64,000 nt of DNA from Diadema antillarum (Eukaryota). Under the pieces are notes generated by a model. That model did not search any database. It worked only from the letters and a program-made list of their open reading frames with translations, and had not been told where the DNA came from. The DNA is taken from positions 1 through 64,000 of the forward strand of contig NW_027270906.1 in assembly GCF_040938485.1 (NCBI RefSeq), read 5' to 3'. The position numbers and the translations under genes were made by a program. The stretch's first letter is position 1, and the number at the start of each line of letters is the position of its first letter. Of the stretch, positions 4,101-54,475 are shown one piece after another.

Positions 4101-6237
4101 GGAATCCCCCGGTTGGAAAACCAAATTAATGTGCATCATGTCCGTATGAGCATGTCCCAAATTTGTGATAATACTAATATCTTTGCCTCCTGTTATCATT
4201 ATAGCATCGCATTTCGTAGGACGCGAGTTCTCTCAGATCATTTTGCTACCAATTGCTCTATTTGATAGAATAAAGTCGTGTGACCCAAACATGCCTAAAT
4301 TTCAATGATTCATGTCCTCACCGCTTTAACCCAAGAATTGTAGTAGCTAGCTGGAAGTTCTGGCCCTTTTAGAACGTTTGTCCATGAACCTGTCTGTCTC
4401 AGTAGAAAAAAAAAATCACAAACTACCATCAAGGGTCTAATTCATAGCACCGGTAAGTATGTGTCACATTTATATCAATTCTATATCAGTGCTATTGATA
4501 TACCTTATTTCTGTTCAGGTCATTCACACTCATTCATCTGTCCTACTTTGCCTAAAGGAGAGAAGAGACGACCAATCAAAATCTGAATGTAGAGATGTAC
4601 TTAGCATGTTATGCTGGATGCAAAGTTTTCACTCAGCATGCGGAGAGGTATCTGAGTCAGGAAATCATAACATTGCACTATCAATGAAAGTTGTAAATAG
4701 AGATGATTTTGATCATGAAAGAGGCATAACTCTTAATGTCACTGAGTTCGTATCTAACAATAAGGTAGAGCCGAATACGGCAGGTTCTCGGAAGTGAACG
4801 CCATTAACAGAGCAAACCAGTGAAGTGGCCGCTACCGCATTGCCTCCGGATTATACCCTCATACCCTACGCATTAATCTTTCCCCGCCTCAATGGGCTGT
4901 TGCCATGGAACTATACGGCTAGCATCACAGTCCGATCATGCATCCCCGAAATTGAACGTTTTAATGGTTTTGTCATAACAGAGCGCGAGCGCCGAGGTTG
5001 TTTGCCCTTTGCTTGAAGGAAATTGAATCTTACTGTATGTTTGTAAACAGGAGAAAACATAGCGATTAGGAAAAAAAAAATAATCGTCTGTTTTTCCCCA
5101 AAGCTCTGTAAGGGAAGAGTTTTGGAGGAATCATGTACCATGTTGGAGTAAAGATTATTTTCTTACAAATTTGATTCGCCTACCCTGCGGACGAAATCCA
5201 TTATCCCCGAAGAACATGACGCGTTATAAAATCCATCAACCTTTCTAAGGTCGTTCAGTGAGTTGAAATAATTCACGGTACCTTGATGACTCTACTGAGG
5301 GGTGATTTAATCTATTTTGCCCTCACGTCTAATGTCATAGTGTATAAAATTATACATCATGTACTCATGTTCATTGTTGTATGTGTACTGTTGTTGTTTT
5401 TTATTTATTAAAGGAATTGAGGAAGAAGATGTGTTTATTCGAGTTTCTCATAAGTAAATAGATAAATGAATAAATAAATATATGAATATATGAATATATA
5501 TGTATATATATATATAAGAGAGAGAGATAGATGAATGAATAAATCAATAAATAACTGAATTAACAAATAAAGATGATAAAATAAAGATAACTCAATTGAT
5601 AGATAGATAGATATACATACTACATACATACATAAATAGATGGATAAATAACTAGATAAATAAATAAATGAATAAACAAGCGTGTCTATCTAAATCATGT
5701 CATCGTTGTCTCCTCAAGGGGACTTGAATTTTCCAGTGAGACTGGATGCGTACTAGACGGAGGAGCATACATGTATTGATATGAGCTACAAGAAATCCTA
5801 AAACCTCTCCGGCGCCTTTGTCCGTCGCTAATCCATGCGCAATGTTATCCGTGTTTTACGCAGATTAAATCTTTAACCTTGCCCAAGCCTTCCCTTGTGA
5901 GGACTTTTCAGCTTTAGCAAAATGTTATTTAATACAGGCAACATGACGCACGCACAAAGTGTCATGTATTATTGTCATTATTATCAGTATTGTTTTATTA
6001 TTATCGTAGTTACTATTATTATTATCATCATTACTATTATTACATTATCATTACTATTATCATTATTATAATTATTATCATTATTATCATTATTGTCTTT
6101 TTGTCTCACAGATTCTTCGCCGTAAAGGACCCTGTGGCCTTCAAGAGCAGATTTACGAGAAGGCGCACTAAACTGATCATCGTCTTCATCTGGCATCAGC
6201 CATCGTTGCTGCCATTCCTGTGGCCTTTATGTTTGAG
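1124..6237 (+). CDS. Class A (rhodopsin-like) GPCR, partial: exons 1124-1289 (TM2-TM3) and 6112-6237 (ICL2-TM4); apparent 1-bp deletion at ~6191-6194; other exons not found
   Basis: Exon 1124-1289 reads (A)DITALIVVLFHITEFYPSTWTMLWAYNIQCQIHRCARFVGFNCTVFTMMAIAVDR, with the TM3 Cys and the DR of the DRY motif, and ends at a gtgagt donor in phase 2. The cacag acceptor at 6111 continues in phase as FFAVKDPVAFKSRFTRRRTKLIIVFIW. Restoring one G gives ASAIVAAIPVAFMFE up to a gt donor at 6238. Confidence 0.8.
1450..1578. other. Assembly gap (129 N)
   Basis: Run of N in the sequence, followed by a CT-rich low-complexity tract to ~1900. Confidence 1.
2397..2710. repeat. Minisatellite with ~33-35 bp units alternating as a ~67 bp higher-order dimer
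   Basis: Alternating ttcacactgtgtttcacacttgtgtcacagcgtgt and ttacactgtgtttcacattgtgtcacaacgtg units, about 4.5 dimers. Confidence 0.9.
5980..6095. repeat. (ATT/ATC)n-type low-complexity repeat upstream of the GPCR acceptor
   Basis: tattattatcatcattactatt... tract; it explains the poly-Y/poly-I spurious ORF 5972..6241. Confidence 0.9.
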
Positions 6238-7009
6238 GTGACGCCCTCACTTGACAAGTTACAGTATAGTGTCCAATGATTTCGCTGATAATAAAGTAGG
6301 AAGGGGAAGATTTGAAGAAACACCACAATATAGGCCGATACTATAGTTGAAAGTCACTTCTTATTAGTTAGTACAGGGCATTCAATTTGGTCTGTCAGCT
6401 ATGTTCAATTATTGATATGCGTATAAGTGCGTCTGGCGTTTGATTCTCCACTCTCCCTCTCTCTTAATCTGTACCATATTTGTCATCATTCTCTAACTCC
6501 ATAAAAAAGACTGAAGGATCGCTAAATTTTTGTGTAAGAGTTCCTCAAGACACATCAAACAATTTTCTTGCAAAAAAAAATAGCAAAATCAAAATCAGTT
6601 TCTTTTGTTTTTTATTGTTTTGTTAATTTCTTATGTATTTTAGTGTTTTTTTACCTTTTGTTTTCTATTGGTTTTTTTGCCAAAATTTGTTGCAGGCACT
6701 TTTTCAAGCTTCTCTACATTACAATTGATTAATTTCACTGGTCAAAGGTTGAAACAATCTAGTTGATATCAAATTAACAAAAAAACACAATTTGCATTGG
6801 ATTTGCACACGATATCATGAATTTGAGCTATTTTCAGGTCGACATGCATTTATGTAAAACATTACATAACTGCAGAACGGTGTACCCGGACGTCGCAAAT
6901 TTGGTCTCAAAATATGCGGGAGACTTCAATGAAAAAAAGTCATGAGACGATGCGGCAAAATCTTTGCGCGTTGCGAAATCGTGGTGGGAAATGTTGGGGG
7001 GGGGGGGGG

Positions 7010-8291
7010 TCTACAGCATTCGCATCACTACAGAAGGCTCACAAGGTGCACATTGAGTGATTTTTTTTTTTGCCACTTCGAAGGGGCAATTGATGGAATC
7101 TGTGGGCCAGCAGAGCATTTTGTGTGGAAAGTAGTGTTAAAAACAATTGAGGCCATCACTTCAAATTTTCTGTCCCAATTTGAAATTATCATAGAATGGT
7201 TTGTCGGGGTTAATTACGCTTCAGGTACAGCGAACAGACTTTTGTTTTCAGAACAATGCAGAGATTAGACATTCAAACTGGTCTAAAAGATAAAAAAATA
7301 CAAGTCTCTAGACTTGAATAAACATGAATTCAACTAATACACTGTATTATTTGAGTTAATGTCATATGACTTACAATTTTTGTAAACTACTTTCACAATA
7401 ATATAAAACATTGCATTATGCTGGATTCCTATTATGCAATGACTACGCACACCACAATTGGCCATACACTGTACATACTACAATTTTTATACCGGTACAT
7501 TAGTTTTTGCTCTTTGATTTCTTTCCCCTTTATTAAAGGTACTCTTGATAAGGAACACATTAACTGTTTTGCTCAATAAAACAGGCTACTTTTGTGAATT
7601 ACTGTGAGTCATGATGAACAGTGATTGGCAAAGTTATAAAACTGTGGATATCACTTGACCCAGTCTTTAAAAGTGGTACTTTTTTTTAGTTTGTAATTTA
7701 TGCAAACTTTTTTTCTAGTCTTTTTTAACATGTACAAGTACAATGGTACTATACTGCATGAGTTTGATGATTGAAATAAGAGTTTAATGTCTTATCTGAT
7801 GTTTCTTAGCTTTAACTTTGCATTCTCATGGGGAAACATGTAATGATTTGAGTTAACACACAATTCTGTAACCACTGGACAAACCGTAACGTTACTAACC
7901 GTAACGTTACTAACCATGATTTTTGTACATAATTTTCAAACAAAGTTATAATAAGAAAGGATATTTGGGGTAGATATTGCCCTTAAAGCTAGAAATGAAA
8001 AATAAGTGTTGATATATTTCAAGCTATACCAGTTTTAGCAAACTTTTTGTTCAAAGATGCTCATCATTTTTTTATGTCCTTTTTTTGTAACGTTACTAAC
8101 CGGCATTAAAAGCAGACCTTTCTTCTAAAATAATTCATGAAATGATTTCATTCTTTGCTCTGTTCTAGGTCTACACTAGAATGATCTCTGGTGACATTAA
8201 TGAGACTTCACATCCACAGATAGAGAAATGAGTCTAATCTAAATCATGACAATGTCCCTAAAATGTAACGTTACTAACCGCGGAATTGCCC
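7010..8291 (+). mobile_element. One-ended, decayed Sola2-like DDE DNA transposon fragment
   Basis: KVHIE*FFFCHFEGAIDGICG at ~7045-7105 resembles the W.FF...HGKG..DG.GG transposase motif. Subterminal taacgttactaacc repeats occur at ~7887, 7900, 8087 and 8266. Terminus ggaattgccc ends at 8291. No matching left terminus was found. Confidence 0.6.
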
Positions 8292-8413
8292 ATCTAAAGA
8301 AAATTCTACATCTGAAATGGGTAAATCCATCATTCTAATCAAACATGTTTTGTGCATGCAGCAGCACACACTGGTCCTTTTTGGCTCTATAGTTCAGAGA
8401 TGTGTTAACTCAC

Positions 8414-11400
8414 CAGTCTTCAGTTCCTGAATGTCGTAGAATATCCTGAGGTTGGGGTCAAGCCCCTGGAGGGTGTCTACAATGTGCTTGGCTGCCTCCG
8501 AGTCAGCGTGACTGTAGGAGACGAAGACGTCGTAGCAGAATGGGTCACCATCGGACTCGGCCTCGCCCTCACCATCATCAGTCGCCATGACAGGCAAGGT
8601 CTTGATAAGCTGCTGACAGGTACTGGCTATCTTCTCAGATGAATCATCTCTGTTGAGGTGATAATCAAACAGACAAAGAATGCTACTTACAAACTTCAAA
8701 GACCAAACCGTAAGCCCCACTGCATGGATCCATCAAATGCATATAGAGTAGTGTAGACAAGAACTTTTGTGTGCACTTTAATTTTCGGAATATCGGTTCT
8801 CCTGAAATTCACAAAATAAAATGCATACAAAAATTTCTGGTTTTACAGCATGTAGAAAAAAATCGAACCAGGCTAGATGGTAATTACAGGTGTTCGTGTT
8901 ATTACTAGTGTTATTAATTACTGGTAAGAAACTGTATGCTAACCCATTTTGAAACAGTCTTTTAGATTTTTAGAAATATCTCCTTGTTTGTGTCAAACTA
9001 TCCAAAACAAGAATCCCAATTAACAAGCCCCACCTCCAAACAACTGGAGACCTCTGTCAATTCATCTTCACATCTGTCTTAAATCACAATAAATCTATTT
9101 GGAATACCAATGTTATATTCAAAGACATTGAGTAAGTTCATTGATTAGGGCTTAAAACTCCAAGACATAATGACAATCACCTTTATGATCAAAAGGACAG
9201 AAGACAACCCAAGCCTGAATATGAAATGAATGAGAATCAATACATTCACATTTTTACCACAACAAAAACTGCAATCTGATGTTAAAATATGGCCCTGACT
9301 GTATTCCAATGCTAACCATCACCTACATTTTACTCACCTGCAGTCAGCATACTGCACAAGACCCATGTAAGTGGGCAAGGTGACAGTTTCCACAAAGAAC
9401 GGTGCCAAAATATCCCTCTGAGCTTGGCGGTTACAGCACAGGGCAATGTTATACTGCTCCAAACAGTCTGGTGACTCCAAGTAGTTTGGACTCAACACTG
9501 TGACAGAAGACACAATTCTTTATGCATATTTCACTCATTTTGTGAAACACAGAGAACCCCTGTGTACCACATTTATATGAGAATTGATTGTATGGACAGA
9601 GAATTCACATAATTTTGAGAAACTGAGCTTTTGTCGGTACTTCTTTGTGTGAAAGGAATTGTGAACAGTTCTCTGCTCAATAGTTCACCATATGACTTTC
9701 CTCTAAGCCCAACCTGGCCAATAAAATTCATCTAACTGTACATATTTCAATACAAGTTTTGATGAATCATTTTGCTAAAACCTAGTTAATGAATAAATCA
9801 ATTCTAATCTCTAGTGATAGAGGATATCTACAACTGTAAGTCTGGGGGCTAATTTCACGAGGATTTTTGAAGCCATTTCAACTGACCATAATTATATACC
9901 TCTATCTTCAAGCAACTTAGAGTTAGCGACTGAATGGTTGTTTTCTAACTGTTGCCATAGTAACTGAAATCACTGAGATGTACACTGACTGCAAACCCCC
10001 TTAACCTATTGAGGACGAATCCCGAGTATACTCGGGCAAGTGTCTATGGGAAATGCCTGTTGTAGCAAAATCAGCCTGTCCTCAACGGGTTAAATATCTG
10101 GCCGCGTGGTGAATTTTTACATCTATATAATAAGACTACAACTGACCAGTGATGACCCGGGCACACCTGGTCATAACAGAGTAGATGTCCTGCTGCCAAA
10201 TAGCATCTCCGTCCACCTTCTGCTGCGAGGCGTAGATTCGTACGTCAGGCTTGAGCTGCTGTAGAGTGGCCTGGATGTCGTCGACTACCTTCTGGTCTTT
10301 GTTGCTGTACGACAGGTAGACATCGAAGTCCAGTTCGACTTCCTGTGGGAGAGAAACAATGAGAAACCCCTCATCGTAACATCACTCTAGTAACAACAAA
10401 AGCACTTATTCTCCTTTTCCTCTGGAGTAGAAGAAAGTCAAATGGGGATAACAGATGATAAAATGTCAATTTATGTTATATGCTTCCTTTCTGTTGACAG
10501 GAAGACTTGCATTGAGATACTTTATCACACATTGTATCATTTACATTGCTACATACAATAACACATTGTAAAGGTGTGATGAATTAGGTGACCTTACAAA
10601 ATAAGGTATGTTTGACAAAGCACACACATATGTCCAAAAATGTACAGGAATGGCTGGTAACACTTTTATTCAATTCATGCATGATGTTGTGTTGATTAAT
10701 AATTCTCAAAATAATTCAAAAAAGGCACAAATAACAAAAATTAAATACTGTATTGTTGGCCGCAAAGAAGGATTTCAAATAAGATGCACAGGAATTTTTT
10801 TCTTCTGTGTTTCTTCTACGTCCCTTCTGTCAAACGGCATGAAGAATGGTATGGCACCTCCAATGGCATGGAGATACCTTAGACTCTTTATGGGACATTG
10901 AAATTATGTAATTTATTGCACAGCTTGCAGGGAATGAGTCATATTACAATTACACTCTACCTTTGTGATGGAGAGTTTGGTCTCGAACCTCTCCTTGAGA
11001 TCAGAGAAGAGCTTGAGGATGTCGTCATCATTTGGTCTCTGGAGGATCATCGCTGCCTTTGTCTTGCTGAGGACCTTGGCATAGATGACAATCTTGAGGA
11101 GGCGGAGAGGAAGACCCGCCTTCATCCAGCTCACAGCATTCTCCACCATCCCTTTTAGCATCTCACACTCATCACATCCCTGGGGTTATTCAAGGCAGCA
11201 AAGTTGACATCAAGTACTGTAAAGTCAAGTTGTACTCTTAAAACAAATGTACAATTGACTGTTATGGTAAAAAGATATTTTTTTCAACTCCAGGAGAAAG
11301 TTGTCTATTCCTGTTTATGACTCTATATCCCAACAGCTTTCTTTACCATCTCTTTAAGCATTTTGCCTTCATCATATTACTAACGTCATTTCAGCAACAG

Positions 11401-14096
11401 ATTTTACATGAAAGATAAGTCTAGCCTCCTGCCAGAGCTAAAGCTCCAAAAACTATTAATATTTTGTGGTGGTCCTTTTTGATCCAATATTCAAAGGCAC
11501 AAGCAATGCACTTCATCCTATGATTTCAATTACCTTATTCTTGATCCTTAGTAAACAAGACAGGACAAGCCAAGAGTACTGCCCACAGAGAAGGCATCAT
11601 ATCTACACACAACAGTATCAGGCCATTTATCAGTAATATTCAATCTATCATAACAATTTTTGTCATCTTCCAACTTTTTGCAGAGCTTCCCCAATTTTCA
11701 TTGAAAAATAAATCTTCATGGTAATACAGTATTTCCTTCAAGATTAGATTACTGTAAGAGTGGACATTTTGAGGCAATTGTTTTTGTTTTCTGTATTTAC
11801 TGAAATATTTCCCAAATTTGAAAGCCCTAATCTGCAGTGTGCAAAATTTGTGAAAAATTTCACAATATGCAACATTTACAGTAGAATGAAACTCAGACAC
11901 TAAATGACCATATCCCCTTAAACTTAAATTTGATCTGTTAAGCGAAGTCAATGTCCCACCTGGCTCCCAGCATTCAATAGTGGTGTGATGACTGAGCCGT
12001 CCTGGTTGTTTAGGATGGGGACAAGGCAACGGAAGGCGTGGGAAACCAACTCCTGGGGGCGCCCTCTTGCCCCTCTACTTGGGTCATAGTACCTTGACAA
12101 TCAAAATGAGAAGTTAGTCATGACTTGTCAATTGCTGCAGAGATTGTATCAAAAGTGTGATGTAATTCGATATAGTAAAGTTTACTGAACATATTGTTAA
12201 CATATGAATGTACAAACATGTACACATATAAATATATAGAAAATAATACAGATTAATCACCTTCCTCTCAGAAGATTCCCTACAAGAGCACAACACTTTT
12301 TTTCATTGGTATAACTATAGTCCTTGATAATCATGAGATAAGCACATAAGAAAATCTAAAGGACAGGTCAGGGTGTGGCATTTCATCAAGTGTTTTGTCA
12401 GTGATTTTCAGTGACGAATTTGCTCTTAGCAAATCAGATGTGAGGATTTCAGCTAAAAACAGTTGTAAGTGACTGACAAGTTTCATGAAATGCTGTTCTG
12501 ATGTTGGATTGCGACTATAACTGCTTGTTTCATTGCTCCCAGCATCACCCTTTTATATTAGACCAGCACATTTCATCTTTACACCTGTGATACATTACAA
12601 CAATAAAAACACAAAACTTCTTGTCTATGCTTCTGTATACTCGTTCTTTGCAATACACATACCACCTTACAAACATACACACACATACACATTCTCACAC
12701 TACTTTACAACAATTTGAATAATGAGGGTGATTACCACTGCACTTCACAAGGCAAACATACATAACCTTGGTATTGACTCTGTGCAAAATAACAAACAAT
12801 GTACAAGGAACACTTACAGTAAATAACCAGGAGACATCAAATCAATTCTCAAAAGAGTCTAGGAAATACTGTATATGCCGAATATTTTGCGAATTTCGTG
12901 AGTCAGGTGCTATTCGCAAAATAACAGACACACGAAAATAATGGCTCTGATCCTAATATGAATGAGACTTACACATAACAATTTCTCTGTTCAGTAAATT
13001 ACTCCACAATCGCAAATTAAGCCACTTGCAAAATCGTCGAGAAGTCCCGATTCACGGAAAATATGGCATATACAGTAGTTTACAAAATAAGATTTATCAA
13101 AAACAAACAAAACAAAACAAAAAACAAGAAGACATTCTGGCAAACACGTCATACTTTTTTCCAGAAAATTCTCCCCCTCTGCTCTCAAAGCAAAGCAATC
13201 TATGATAAGGCAGGTGGTCAGGGAGAGGCTTGGTCCACCAGCAGGAATACAGGGCACGAAGATCCTCCTCTTGGTGGCTCCTTTTCAGCTGGGCCACATC
13301 AATCTCAAGATTCTTATAGAGGGCGCCCATCACACCTATGCCTTTGCTGTAGCTTCCTACAAAGCAGAGAGAGAAATAAATTCCCAACAATTTTCCTTTG
13401 GACTAAGAGCACCTGTTGAATATGTCCTGATAAAGATATTGACAAGATTTGTCGATGACATGTCAGACTTTCCAGTCCTGACCACCTGAAATGTTTTAAA
13501 ATATTACAAGCAAGTTTAATGCAAATACATGAAAAAACTTACCCTGAGTTGCATGTCAAGATTACAATAAAAGAATATCCTTTTGTGATAAAATGTATTT
13601 CAATAAAACTTGCTAGAAAAATGTATCAGATACTAAATAATGGCAGAGAATCATCACATGTTTACAGTGTATTGGGAAGAAATGTAGCAAAACAAACAAA
13701 ATTGCATGAAAATACTAAAAACAAAGTACAAAAAACAACAAACAAGCAAACAAACATACCATTTCCCTGGTATAGTTTTGCTTGGTAAAAAAATTAAAAT
13801 TTTTTTTTTTTTTAAATATGGAGAGGCTCCATCTGCCCTTGGGATTAGTTAATCTTTTACGGATTCTACATGATAGGAAAAACAAATTACAAAACAACCT
13901 TACCTCCAAAGGCTGATACCAGGATGACATCTACTTTGTCTGAGTTAGGAAGCTTGGTGATATCTCCAAGGCAGAGCTCAATCCTACAGTCTCCTCCAGG
14001 TGTCCGCACGCACAAGGTGTCCTTTACAAGGAGGCCTGGAACCGGACCATCCGCATCACTGGGCCCCTCGGGACAATCGGTCAGAGTCGAACTCAT
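8414..14096 (-). CDS. Uncharacterised Macro-like domain + TIR + TIR protein, 3'-incomplete. Coding exons 14096-13904, 13356-13155, 12092-11960, 11179-10961, 10342-10147, 9497-9338, 8649-8414 (1339 nt, ~446 aa)
   Basis: All six introns are GT-AG with matching phases (1,2,0,0,1,2) and no internal stop. Macro-like motifs: [60 protein letters not shown]1: [11 protein letters not shown]...[40 protein letters not shown]2 starts [22 protein letters not shown]...[13 protein letters not shown] and ends at a gtgagt donor at 8413. An in-frame upstream stop in the putative UTR exon supports the ATG at 14096. Confidence 0.88.
10005..10089. mobile_element. 85-bp piggyBac-like MITE (TTAA TSD, CC...GG termini), copy 1
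   Basis: ttaa|cctattgaggac...gtcctcaacggg|ttaa; a closely similar copy lies at 26378-26462. Confidence 0.75.
12867..13077. mobile_element. MITE with tactgtatatgcc...ggcatatacagta terminal inverted repeats
   Basis: TIR of ~20 bp (tactgtatatgccgaatattt versus aaaatatggcatatacagta). Confidence 0.65.
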
Positions 14097-52100: not shown

Positions 52101-54475
52101 TTTCAGGGTGACGTCCGAGTCGTCTCCAGACAAGGGCCCGTTGCATAAAACTTACCGTTGAATTTCAATGGTAACTACCGTCAAAATTAGGCGTCACAGC
52201 CAATCAGCATCAAGGATTATAAAATTTACCGCTAATTTGAAGACTTACCGCTAGAAACGAGCGGTAAGTCCAGCGGTAAGGGTTATATGCAACAGGGCCA
52301 AGGTGACAACTTTATTTGCCCGGAAGTCGCCTGGAAGTTGCCCGCGACGTCTCCGAGACGTCTTCTAAGTTTTGGAGATGTCTCCGAAACGTCTTTTCAA
52401 TTTCGGAGACGTCTCTGAGACGTATACGCATTGTCTCTGCTATGGCATGGGTCACCACCGGGTCTCAGCAATGTTGCGGAGACGTCTCGAATATGTCGCT
52501 GGCAAAATTAGTCTCCACGACATGGCCGCAACTATAAGGAGACGTCGCGGAGACGTCTTCGAGGGGTATGGAGAATGCACAAAGTCTTCAATTAAAATGG
52601 AACATGTTCTATTCTCCTGCGACTTCTTCAGACTCCATGATCGAGACGTCTCCGCTACCATCGCAGCGAGACTCGAGTTTTACACCAATATATGCATGAC
52701 TGTGTGAGCTTTATGAATCACATCACCTATAGGCTAGCTGTTACATGTATTTTATCCGTGTAGAGTGAGAATACAGACCAGCTGGTATACAGGCAGCATT
52801 CAGGCAACACTCTTGACTTTTTTGGAAGTACACCATCATGGAACTAAGTATTATCTAATAATCATAAATGTGAATTCCGCCGTTGGGTATCACAATCCCT
52901 TCCTGTTAAAGTGAATAAATTGTGAACAAAGACAAACTCACTTTCTCCTGCCATGACGGCCTGTGTGAATCTCTTGGGTAGCATGCCCGCGTAGCCATAG
53001 AAACTCGACTGCTGAACTGGAAAGGCAACAGAGAACGGACATTCTTGATTACGGGCAAGGAAGTTTATTATGTTTGCATGAATCCATTATTTTCTGGCAT
53101 TGTGCATATATTCATCCTATCGTCAAAGAACATGCCACATACGGAACTAATTTTTTTTTTGCGCAAATTAAATGACTAATTATTTGAACAGTGAAAACAG
53201 CTCGCTCGTGAGGGTCACTGTCCAATAAGCTCGCAGTCCTTGATTCAGATACTATATTATACGTTATCTAATCATGGCCGAGTCATTACAGTAATGACAC
53301 GCCAAGGCAGTGAGCTTGGCGACTTTTGAATTTAGGCACAGGTTATATGAGCCATTAGTCCCAAGACGGTGTCCTTGTGTGAGAAACCAGACAATTTTAT
53401 GCCCGGCCATTCATACAGACATTCGAAATTAGAACCCGAGACAAACACAGAAGGAAATGCATGTACGTGCATAACAGAAGAAAAAAAATGGAAAGAGAAG
53501 TTCGGGGTAAGGTCCTGCTGAGACACAGATTACAGTTGTTGGTAATATAATTTCTCAGTTCTTATATAGTTGACATCAATACTTTGACTCCAATATACGA
53601 GGGGGAGTGGAAGGGACCGATGCATGGTAGAAGACCACTTCCTAACACAATAACAAACCAGACAATGTAACGACAAATGGATTTGAAAAGTGGACGTGAA
53701 GTGAGACTAATAATTGACAAACATGATGTCTTACAAAAGCAATGCGTTGTTCATTACTATATTAAGGGCATCATTTGGCGTGAACTAATAGGCATGCAGT
53801 TTTAACGACCCATAATTGTGTCGCAGACAGTTCTAATTTGATTTTTAAAGCCGATAAGGATTATATGTATTTTCTATCAACAAAGGTATAAGATTGTCTT
53901 CTCGGGTAAAATGATTGATCAGTAATGACACTACCTGTGCATCCAAACGCAGTGACAGCTACGGCGAGGAGGATGACCGCGTAGGCGGTCTGTTGGGAGA
54001 GACTGGCGTCGAGACCGACGACGAGGAAAGCAGCAAGGAGGAGAGCACAGAGGGCCATGATTTGCCCCATCAGGATCCGCCGCTGCACCGAGATCTTTAC
54101 CACCAGGGCGTTGTTCAGCATGACCGCCGCGAAACCGACGAGGAGGTACACGAGGCTCATGTCGAACACGATAGTGGTGTTCGGGAAATGAGAGTGAAAG
54201 AAATCGACGGCGGTGACGAAGCTGTTGTATGGCAAGAGGAACCCCGTGCCGGCGAGCAGGAGCGAGACGTAGACGCAGTTGAAAGGGTCGCGTGGCTGTC
54301 GGACTCGAATTCGTGAATGAGAGTCGTTGATATCCGGGGAATCGGAGTCGGCGTCATCGTTCACGTTTGCATTGTCCGTCCAGCTGGTTGGGGTGGTCAC
54401 CGTCCGTGAATTCTGATTCGCCTCCATGCTGGGAGAGGCGGTTTCAGGTTCTCGGTGAAGACGATTGTCTTTCAT
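46178..54475 (-). CDS. SLC29A4: Equilibrative nucleoside transporter 4 (ENT4/PMAT)-like; exons 54475-53935, 53016-52942, 50632-50405, 49251-49091, 48283-48096, 47301-47061, 46341-46178; two apparent +1 frameshifts
   Basis: LLLAGTGFLLPYNSFVTAVD, TTIVFDMSLVY, AFGCTVQQSSFYGYAGMLPKRFTQAVMAGES, DIWPYMLSIGVTYYITLCLFPGIESE, GISNGYFGSVPMILAPGKV and ELAGNVMTVSY are ENT4-type motifs. Exons 3 and 4 are each one base too long to keep frame (see findings). Confidence 0.9.
51147..51360 (+). mobile_element. Degenerate tRNA-derived SINE
   Basis: ggggctctgTGGCACAGTTGGtaagacg...ctTTGAATCCc head followed by a ctctcgacccaggtgtgtaaatgggtacc core typical of SINE bodies. Confidence 0.65.
52136..52299. mobile_element. 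MITE with ggcccgttgcataaaactt...aagggttatatgcaacagggcc termini
   Basis: Imperfect TIRs with internal ttaccg/cggtaa repeats; boundaries approximate. Confidence 0.55.
52320..52687. mobile_element. GAGACG/CGTCTC-rich repeat element, copy 2 (inverted relative to copy 1)
   Basis: Same dense gagacgtctc motifs as 44660-45020. Confidence 0.6.

Follow-up and report, generated by a model that had tools for sequence, protein, structure and literature searches.

The gene at the contig end and its full-length relatives

The window analysed here is a stretch of 64,000 nucleotides from Diadema antillarum, corresponding to the first 64 kb of contig JBFRCO010000018.1 in assembly GCA_040938485.1 (positions 1–24096 were compared and are identical outside a run of N). 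On its minus strand, from 14096 to 8414, lies a gene of seven exons with GT...AG introns and consistent phases. The gene is a truncated member of a family whose proteins combine a Macro-like domain with three TIR domains, and it comprises the Macro-like domain, the first TIR domain (TIR1) and the first third of the second (TIR2). The joined exons give an open reading of 1339 nt, that is, 446 codons plus one base, and the donor of exon 5 at 10146–10145 keeps the frame open. The NCBI protein XP_071492495.1 (P0109, D. antillarum, 452 aa), encoded within positions 1–24096 of the contig, reproduces this 446-residue model letter for letter and adds six residues from reading through the exon 7 donor at 8413 as far as the stop at 8394. 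An earlier note, made from the DNA sequence alone, had described a phase-consistent, seven-exon reading frame of about 446 aa belonging to a resident animal gene. The first point is confirmed by the NCBI model, apart from its read-through residues; as to the second, contamination or a horizontal insertion was rejected in view of the spliceosomal introns, of synteny in two Diadema species and of a tree that follows animal phylogeny.

The full-length relatives were reached through exon 4, which was searched alone with HMMER against 1.84 billion representative proteins. The protein XP_072167951.1 of Diadema setosum (P0001, 841 aa) is 97% identical to this exon at residues 177–249, with the same residue numbers, and its 90% cluster includes two D. 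antillarum proteins, XP_071492495.1 itself and the 849-aa full-length P0110. Over 446 aa, the window product is 95.5% identical to XP_072167951.1 and 98.2% identical to XP_071510139.1 of D. antillarum. The D. setosum gene has 13 exons over 23 kb, with exon 8 starting 0.6 kb past exon 7, and the full-length D. antillarum copy of 849 aa, located on another contig (JBFRCO010001025.1, 1.31–1.36 Mb), shows the same layout of 13 exons. In both, exons 8–13 encode the rest of TIR2, a third TIR domain (TIR3) and a C-terminal helical tail. A tblastn search with XP_072167951.1 recovered its residues 1–447 in the window and nothing anywhere in it for residues 448–841. Exons 8–13 were also sought in the window with TIR1, with XP_072167951.1 and with the DNA of both relatives' loci, which returned only an interspersed repeat at 6573–7005.

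Across the gene, the window and the other D. antillarum contig share 95–97% DNA identity, and the 123 nt past exon 7 are 100% identical to the full-length copy. Similarity then ends abruptly at 8291, where foreign, repeat-bearing sequence takes over, and similarity to the D. setosum locus is lost at the same place (8301). That the window holds exons 1–7 of a family member, with homology ending in intron 7, is nearly certain. Four copies of the 15-mer GTAACGTTACTAACC, against 0.01 expected, are confined to 400 nt beside the breakpoint at spacings of 15, 186 and 178 nt; the 15-mer contains the palindrome GTAACGTTAC. They possibly correspond to the subterminal repeats of a transposon end, although the window holds neither a second end nor a transposase. 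The last exon is 8.4 kb from the contig end, and the 8.3 kb beyond the breakpoint are rich in satellites and microsatellites; Pfam recognised nothing in the open frames of this tail, which therefore gave no sign of a transposase or a second gene.

Between the window copy and the full-length one of D. antillarum, exons 1–7 show 20 synonymous and 8 non-synonymous differences (proportion of synonymous differences, pS, 0.068; ratio of non-synonymous to synonymous proportions, pN/pS, 0.11), whereas the comparison with D. setosum gives a pS of 0.22 and a pN/pS of 0.09. The low ratio of 0.11 indicates that the window copy is not a decayed pseudogene, and the truncation most likely reflects an insertion together with a contig break, or an uncollapsed haplotype, rather than an old pseudogene. 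Alternatively, the 452-aa protein could be a real product, a truncated duplicate (Macro, TIR1 and stub) expressed as a decoy or regulator of its full-length paralogue, much like the short TIR-only isoforms of other pathways. This would agree with the NCBI model ending by read-through, with seven intact exons at the above pN/pS, with a pS between the two copies that is high for alleles, and with the well-folded Macro and TIR1 parts in AlphaFold2 (AF2). We nevertheless consider it quite improbable, since the break directly abuts a repeat array and has 8.3 kb of contig beyond it, as is typical of an assembly break or a haplotype-specific insertion, and the same neighbouring gene is found on both D. 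antillarum contigs, as in uncollapsed haplotypes. We favour an allele carrying an element insertion in intron 7 plus a contig break, or a mis-join at the contig end, over a young truncated duplicate.

The shared neighbour, which lies upstream of the Macro-TIR gene (minus strand, about 24100–27700), is an FTCD-like (formiminotransferase) gene; it is common to the D. setosum locus and both D. antillarum contigs and is 94% identical between the window and the contig of the full-length copy (L009). Several further elements were noted. The repeat at 6573–7005 is 70–72% identical to two places in the D. setosum locus (L001 23528–23955 and 31895–32323) and is not an orthologous intron. The open frame 5987–6226, which contains EWQQ, was rejected as an exon for want of an acceptor context and of a family match. 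A tandem array at 2391–2695 (67-nt unit, 4.6 copies, 93% matches, 33-nt half units) produces spurious long open reading frames on both strands. Positions 33068–33582 are 75% identical to L009 21600–22103, within an intron of the full-length copy, and represent a repeat dispersed on both D. antillarum contigs. Finally, a 204-aa open frame on the minus strand (53861–54475), with several hydrophobic helices and no Pfam match, may belong to a membrane transporter as its first exon. The features of the gene and its surroundings are listed in Table 1.

Table 1. Features of the truncated Macro-TIR gene and the adjoining contig end (window positions).
Feature	Position	Strand	Description
Exon 1	13904..14096	-	aa 1-65; ATG, disordered N-terminus, first two strands, GDIT motif; matches XP_071492495.1 exactly
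Exon 2	13155..13356	-	aa 65-132; Macro-like loop 1 (remodelled) and helix; invariant Y67, D96, W104, F121, E122
Exon 3	11960..12092	-	aa 132-176; low-confidence insert, FR motif, strand ITPLL, start of loop 2
Exon 4	10961..11179	-	aa 177-249; Macro-like C-terminal helix (W194, GLP), KIVIY strand, then helical linker
Exon 5	10147..10342	-	aa 250-315; first half of TIR1; TIR_2 profile 1-55
Exon 6	9338..9497	-	aa 315-368; second half of TIR1; TIR_2 profile 58-107
Exon 7	8414..8649	-	aa 368-446; end of TIR1, acidic linker, TIR2 residues 1-40
Macro-like domain (predicted)	10979..14030	-	aa 23-243, exons 1-4 including introns; AF2 models, Foldseek and VIA-align matches all Macro
TIR1	8598..10327	-	aa 255-385, exons 5-7 including introns; Pfam TIR_2 257-374; AF2 pLDDT 82-97
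Gln329 codon CAG	9454..9456	-	where NADase TIRs carry the catalytic Glu; motif C-L-E-Q-Y
TIR2 stub	8415..8534	-	aa 407-446; strand, helix, strand; ends before the conserved Glu-Glu part
Exon 7 donor GTGAGT, unused	8394..8413	-	NCBI model: six read-through codons (GELTHL), then TGA
Intron 7, last conserved piece	8291..8413	-	100% identity to the full-length D. antillarum copy; homology ends at 8291
GTAACGTTACTAACC, four copies, same strand	7886..8279	+	directly past the breakpoint; possible subterminal repeats of an inserted element
Repeat-rich tail to contig end	1..8290	.	no recognisable coding sequence, exons 8-13 or orthologous-intron homology; masked N run 1450-1578

The N-terminal Macro-like domain

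The N-terminal domain escapes sequence profiles. Pfam returned no match over the first 250 residues, whether these were submitted as exon pieces or as the N-domains of 46 family members, the best score among the latter being E 0.3 for Macro (PF01661) in one member. A profile built from the alignment of these 46 N-domains (A1) gave only weak matches to PDB sequences (E 0.25–2); all eight are Macro domains, aligned in order. In one of these weak matches, GDIT...VDVIV aligned with the N-terminus of PARP14 macro 3, and ITPLL-x-TG-x-QG...KIVLY with the second phosphate loop and the final strand of the same domain. The AF2 model computed from A1 (pLDDT 85, pTM 0.83) displays the three-layer α/β/α fold and the mixed central sheet that characterise Macro domains. 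Its top Foldseek matches in the PDB are exclusively Macro domains, namely macroH2A1.1, Af1521, YmdB, PARP14 and PARP9 (E 3e-8 to 1e-6, probability 1.00, TM by target 0.6–0.74), and Macro domains were again retrieved from the Swiss-Prot models. In the AF2 model of the entire XP_071492495.1 (452 aa, 59-row alignment, pLDDT 82.5), the Macro part (residues 23–243) and TIR1 (255–385) are well defined, while TIR2 is reduced to a stub of three elements, followed by a disordered tail.

Because Pfam gave no usable Macro match, the assignment rests on structure prediction, by which the N-terminal domain of the window protein is modelled as a divergent Macro fold. The call of a Macro fold, made in the earlier note from the raw sequence, thus proved right at the fold level, and the GDIT motif and final KIVIY strand it had cited both lie within the domain, in exons 1 and 4. 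The Gly-rich loop GIGVMGAL is likewise present but is particular to a sea-urchin subclade rather than family-wide; an insert of 20 low-confidence residues also occurs in the sea-urchin subclade. A SLOG/LOG-type Rossmann fold, which the pattern SAFGG...G.G.MG had brought to mind, was ruled out, as all structural matches are Macro domains.

The conserved residues describe an unusual pocket. All members of the invariant family set (G44, D56, S61, Y67, D96, W104, F121, E122, A191, W194 and G198) are present in the window protein, and S61, Y67, D96, R98, W104, E122, R153 and Q176 are invariant or nearly invariant polar residues in both animals and bacteria. Within the GD of GDIT, the Gly occurs in all sequences and the Asp in 40 of 45 animal and 10 of 14 bacterial ones. 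Loop 2 (P-L-L-x-T-G-x-Q-G) is retained, whereas loop 1, GGG-V-D in hydrolases, is replaced by Y-x-P...[ST]-V-I-G-A-L, and the Asn of the NAAN motif of MacroD-type hydrolases gives way to an invariant Ser-Ala-Phe. Compared with the reader macros of PARP9, PARP14 and macroH2A1.1, to which it is 11–14% identical, the family domain has a loop 1 rebuilt around an invariant Tyr-x-Pro; moreover, those macros are joined to PARP or histone folds, and the family domain is fused to TIRs.

Since the hydrolase residues are replaced and reader macros obtain the higher structural scores, these features point away from a MacroD-type hydrolase and towards a putative module that binds a ligand in a rebuilt pocket. 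In a contrary reading, the Macro-like domain and the TIRs would form a self-limiting pair, with the former an active hydrolase that destroys the TIR product or removes ADP-ribose from proteins. The Macro fold itself speaks for this, as does the invariance of E122, D96 and S61 across animals and bacteria, since these residues could make up an active site of an unconventional kind; in addition, a review predicts that certain Macro domains regulate the TIR-containing phage-defence systems to which they belong by acting on cyclic ADP-ribose (cADPR) (PMC9503650). Given that the residues of known hydrolases are missing, we regard this reading as highly improbable. The earlier suggestion that the protein makes and senses or removes a signal derived from ADP-ribose (ADPR) accordingly divides: removal is disfavoured, and the domain looks like a binder.

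TIR domains and the catalytic position

The TIR part is readily recognised. The Pfam TIR_2 profile matches exons 5, 6 and 7 collinearly, and XP_071492495.1 scores 82.8 bits against TIR_2 (cut-off 28), in two stretches, and 33 bits against TIR. Two TIR domains had been announced behind the Macro domain; TIR1 is indeed whole, but TIR2 is reduced to a stub of 40 residues, and the full-length relatives carry three. Pfam analysis of XP_071492495.1, P0110 and eight relatives returned TIR domains only, with no death, ARM or SAM domain, and no 19-residue stretch of the window protein is hydrophobic enough for a membrane helix (maximum Kyte–Doolittle value 1.44), in line with the reported lack of transmembrane, death and ARM segments.

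NADase TIRs depend on a Glu that opens the helix following strand C (SARM1 E642, plant TIRs, AbTIR). In TIR1, whose best PDB sequence match is the MyD88 TIR (E 2e-6), the stretch C-L-E-Q-Y aligns with C-D-F-Q-T of MyD88, and the catalytic position is occupied by Gln in 42 and by Leu in 5 of 47 full-length animal members. TIR2 has the TLR15/TLR2 TIR as its best PDB match (E 6e-8), with C-x-E-E-Y aligned to C-x-Y-E-L, and also weakly matches the NADases AbTIR and RUN1. Among the same 47 members, Glu is found at the catalytic position in 45 for TIR2 and, by motif only, in 42 for TIR3. The bacterial relatives described below read C-x-E-E-L, and HMMER aligns the second Glu with that of CLDEL in a plant TIR (entry 3jrn). 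By these alignments, the Macro-adjacent TIR1 of animals has lost the catalytic residue, and the two added TIRs have kept it. The window copy itself has no TIR with the canonical Glu (motif W/C-x-x-E-L), as TIR1 carries Gln and the TIR2 stub ends earlier. A TIR acting as an NAD+-consuming signal maker, as envisaged in the earlier note, is therefore disfavoured for TIR1 of this copy, while the Glu kept in TIR2 and TIR3 of its relatives would be compatible with such a role.

The same comparisons allow for a pure adaptor, in which no TIR would be enzymatic: the three TIRs would serve as a scaffold in Toll/IL-1-type signalling, and the Macro-like part would dock on ADP-ribosylated proteins (such as those generated by antiviral ADP-ribosylation of the PARP9/14 type) or on another partner. 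The resemblance of TIR1 to MyD88, including the Gln, that of TIR2 to TLR15/TLR2, and the nearest Macro structures being the non-catalytic readers PARP9, PARP14 and macroH2A all suit this scheme. It explains less well why Glu is so widely kept in TIR2 and TIR3, why TIR2 shows some similarity to AbTIR and RUN1, and why the bacterial sister proteins retain the Glu although bacteria have no Toll pathway. On balance, we rate it as rather unlikely, behind the reading of sensor-gated TIRs set out below.

In overall architecture, the family stands apart from the animal TIR proteins that its domains recall. It lacks the death domain, leucine-rich repeats (LRR) and transmembrane segment of MyD88 and the TLRs and has several TIRs with a Macro-like domain in front. 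SARM1 offers a parallel, as a cytosolic animal TIR protein in which an N-terminal nucleotide-sensing domain gates the TIR, as could be the case in the family, whose TIR2 and TIR3 keep the conserved Glu; however, SARM1 is built as ARM-SAM-SAM-TIR and assembles into an octamer through its SAM ring, whereas the family has no ARM or SAM domain and three tandem TIRs. With TIR as the only Pfam domain, an N-terminal fold predicted to be Macro and no membrane segment, the architecture is distinct from TLR, MyD88 and SARM1, as had been claimed.

Animal family, bacterial relatives and a candidate mechanism

Searching 5.8 billion proteins with XP_072167951.1 yielded 70 relatives, from sea urchins, starfish, brittle stars, sea cucumbers, crinoids and hemichordates as well as from a nemertean, annelids, molluscs and cnidarians (Nematostella, Rhopilema); none of the 70 is from a vertebrate, arthropod or nematode. 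The relatives, such as LOC121422541 of Lytechinus variegatus and LOC5508685 of Nematostella, have three TIR stretches and a C-terminal helical tail in about 770–1000 aa, and D. antillarum has at least five family members. A cluster search of the AlphaFold database (AFDB) added the 1015-aa B3S091 (32% identity, E 2e-39), which is presumably from Trichoplax. One member, P0074 (EukProt, 1385 aa), runs into a Glu/Leu/Phe/Val dehydrogenase (PF02812, PF00208) and is most likely a fused gene model.

One of the matches to XP_072167951.1, P0093, is an intron-less protein of 573 aa encoded at L002 1118–2839 on a 4.6-kb metagenome contig. It comprises a ThsB-like TIR, a Macro-like domain and a second TIR, and a CdiI_N immunity-type gene adjoins it; the arrangement forms a prokaryotic parallel to the multi-TIR architecture of animals. 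Its Macro-like part retrieved 15 more proteins of 338–506 aa from metagenome contigs and contigs of metagenome-assembled genomes (MAGs), so that all 16 bacterial proteins (P0093–P0108) pair a Macro-like domain with TIR; a locus search of bacterial genomes with a single bacterial Macro part found no relative. The three contigs that were looked up show bacterial gene packing, with PGK, GAPDH, transketolase, ZapA and an autotransporter as neighbours. Unlike the animal proteins, the bacterial ones have a single TIR (P0093 having the extra ThsB-like TIR in front), Glu at the catalytic position and no introns. They nonetheless align end to end with the animal Macro-like plus TIR1 module, at 26–30% identity to the window protein, and share with it the motifs GD..VD..VSAF, Y-x-P, DLR, W-x-S, CFE, FR, W..GLP and a C-terminal DCR(E). 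For 14 of the 16 bacterial proteins, the closest animal counterpart of the TIR is TIR1. Macro-like plus TIR1 would be one two-domain module common to animals and bacteria. Fusions of canonical Pfam Macro and TIR domains are, for their part, common in bacteria (clusters of 1234 and 144 members in the ESM Atlas).

A maximum-likelihood tree of this module (60 rows, quick search, unrooted between kingdoms) separates bacteria from animals by one branch with 100% support. Among the animals, cnidarian-type sequences are the first to branch off, and both Spiralia and Ambulacraria come out as single groups, with support of 95 and 86, respectively. Such a topology agrees with vertical inheritance in animals from before the cnidarian–bilaterian split onward, followed by losses. 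The bacterial sister family, which aligns over both domains, is set apart from all animal members by this fully supported branch.

The comparison with type II Thoeris fared less well. In that system, the TIR protein ThsB makes His-ADPR, which is sensed by the Macro-TM effector ThsA. Its two genes form an operon and its effector sits in the membrane, whereas the window gene is a spliced animal gene for one soluble chain; the protein has no match to Pfam ThsA_Macro, and its predicted fold is closer to macroH2A and PARP9. PADLOC returned only generic TIR matches for the protein (ThsB, PDC-S66, SAVED_TIR) and none for the Macro part. The gene is thus not a member of type II Thoeris.

The gene belongs to an unnamed invertebrate family whose nearest non-animal relatives are uncharacterised bacterial Macro-like plus TIR proteins. 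In databases, its members are labelled only as TIR proteins or carry the automatically assigned name ADP-ribosyl cyclase/cADPR hydrolase. Our literature search returned no paper with 'Macro-TIR' or 'TIR-Macro', only general works on NAD+/ADPR conflict systems and on Thoeris, in agreement with the earlier statement that the architecture is not known to be functionally described in animals. Surveys have probably listed such proteins as TIR-only, because Pfam misses the Macro domain; work by Gerdol and colleagues from 2017 is said to define 'ecTIR-DC' classes of invertebrate TIR proteins and may already list the family as multi-TIR.

For the full-length protein, we tentatively propose that a Macro-like sensor gates the TIRs, a mechanism we hold as possible, by analogy, rather than probable. 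The Macro-like domain would act as a ligand-binding sensor and not as a hydrolase; its candidate ligands are nucleotides derived from NAD+ or ADP-ribose, and ADP-ribosylated proteins. Ligand binding would control the assembly of the TIR array, in which TIR1, with its MyD88-like change from Glu to Gln, would be a non-catalytic scaffold, and TIR2 and TIR3, in which Glu is kept, would cleave NAD+ or recruit partners. Such a logic would be akin to that of SARM1, where a metabolite-sensing domain gates the TIR, and to bacterial pairs of Macro and TIR.

Several observations weigh against this interpretation. The Macro profiles of Pfam (PF01661, Macro_2 and ThsA_Macro) had no match on the exon pieces, and the remodelled loop 1 of the binding cleft means that ADP-ribose binding would not be assured. 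TIR3 matched no solved TIR in the PDB sequence search, and to our knowledge the TIRs of TLRs carry a conserved Glu without known NADase activity, so that the Glu in TIR2 and TIR3 is not proof of catalysis. PADLOC found no defence match among nine neighbouring genes in four bacterial contexts, and an immune or defence role is thus unsupported by these four unrelated neighbourhoods. The mechanism draws on fold, motifs and analogy, and no ligand, enzyme activity, expression or phenotype has been described for family members. Taken as a whole, that is, gene identity, truncation and mechanism together, our explanation has slightly less than an even chance of being right. As far as the family is concerned, the interpretation given in the earlier note receives partial support, whereas for the window copy it is weakened.

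The locus itself, a partial copy at a contig end, is of lower value than the family it reveals, in which current annotation misses a Macro domain that is invisible to profiles and yet confidently predicted at the level of the fold. TIR domains in bacteria and plants are known as signal-making NADases. The full-length family may, although we consider this unlikely, represent in animals a single-chain relative of the nucleotide-signalling immunity of bacterial TIRs, inherited since before the cnidarian–bilaterian split as a Macro-like plus TIR module held in common with bacteria. TIR2 and TIR3, with their Glu, would then make a signal from NAD+ or deplete NAD+. If this were true, the Macro-like domain would sense a TIR-made signal, or an ADPR or NAD+ metabolite linked to infection, and switch the protein on, and animals would possess another family of enzymatically active TIRs beyond SARM1. 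With this family, it can be tested concretely whether animal innate immunity makes use of nucleotide signals derived from TIR domains.

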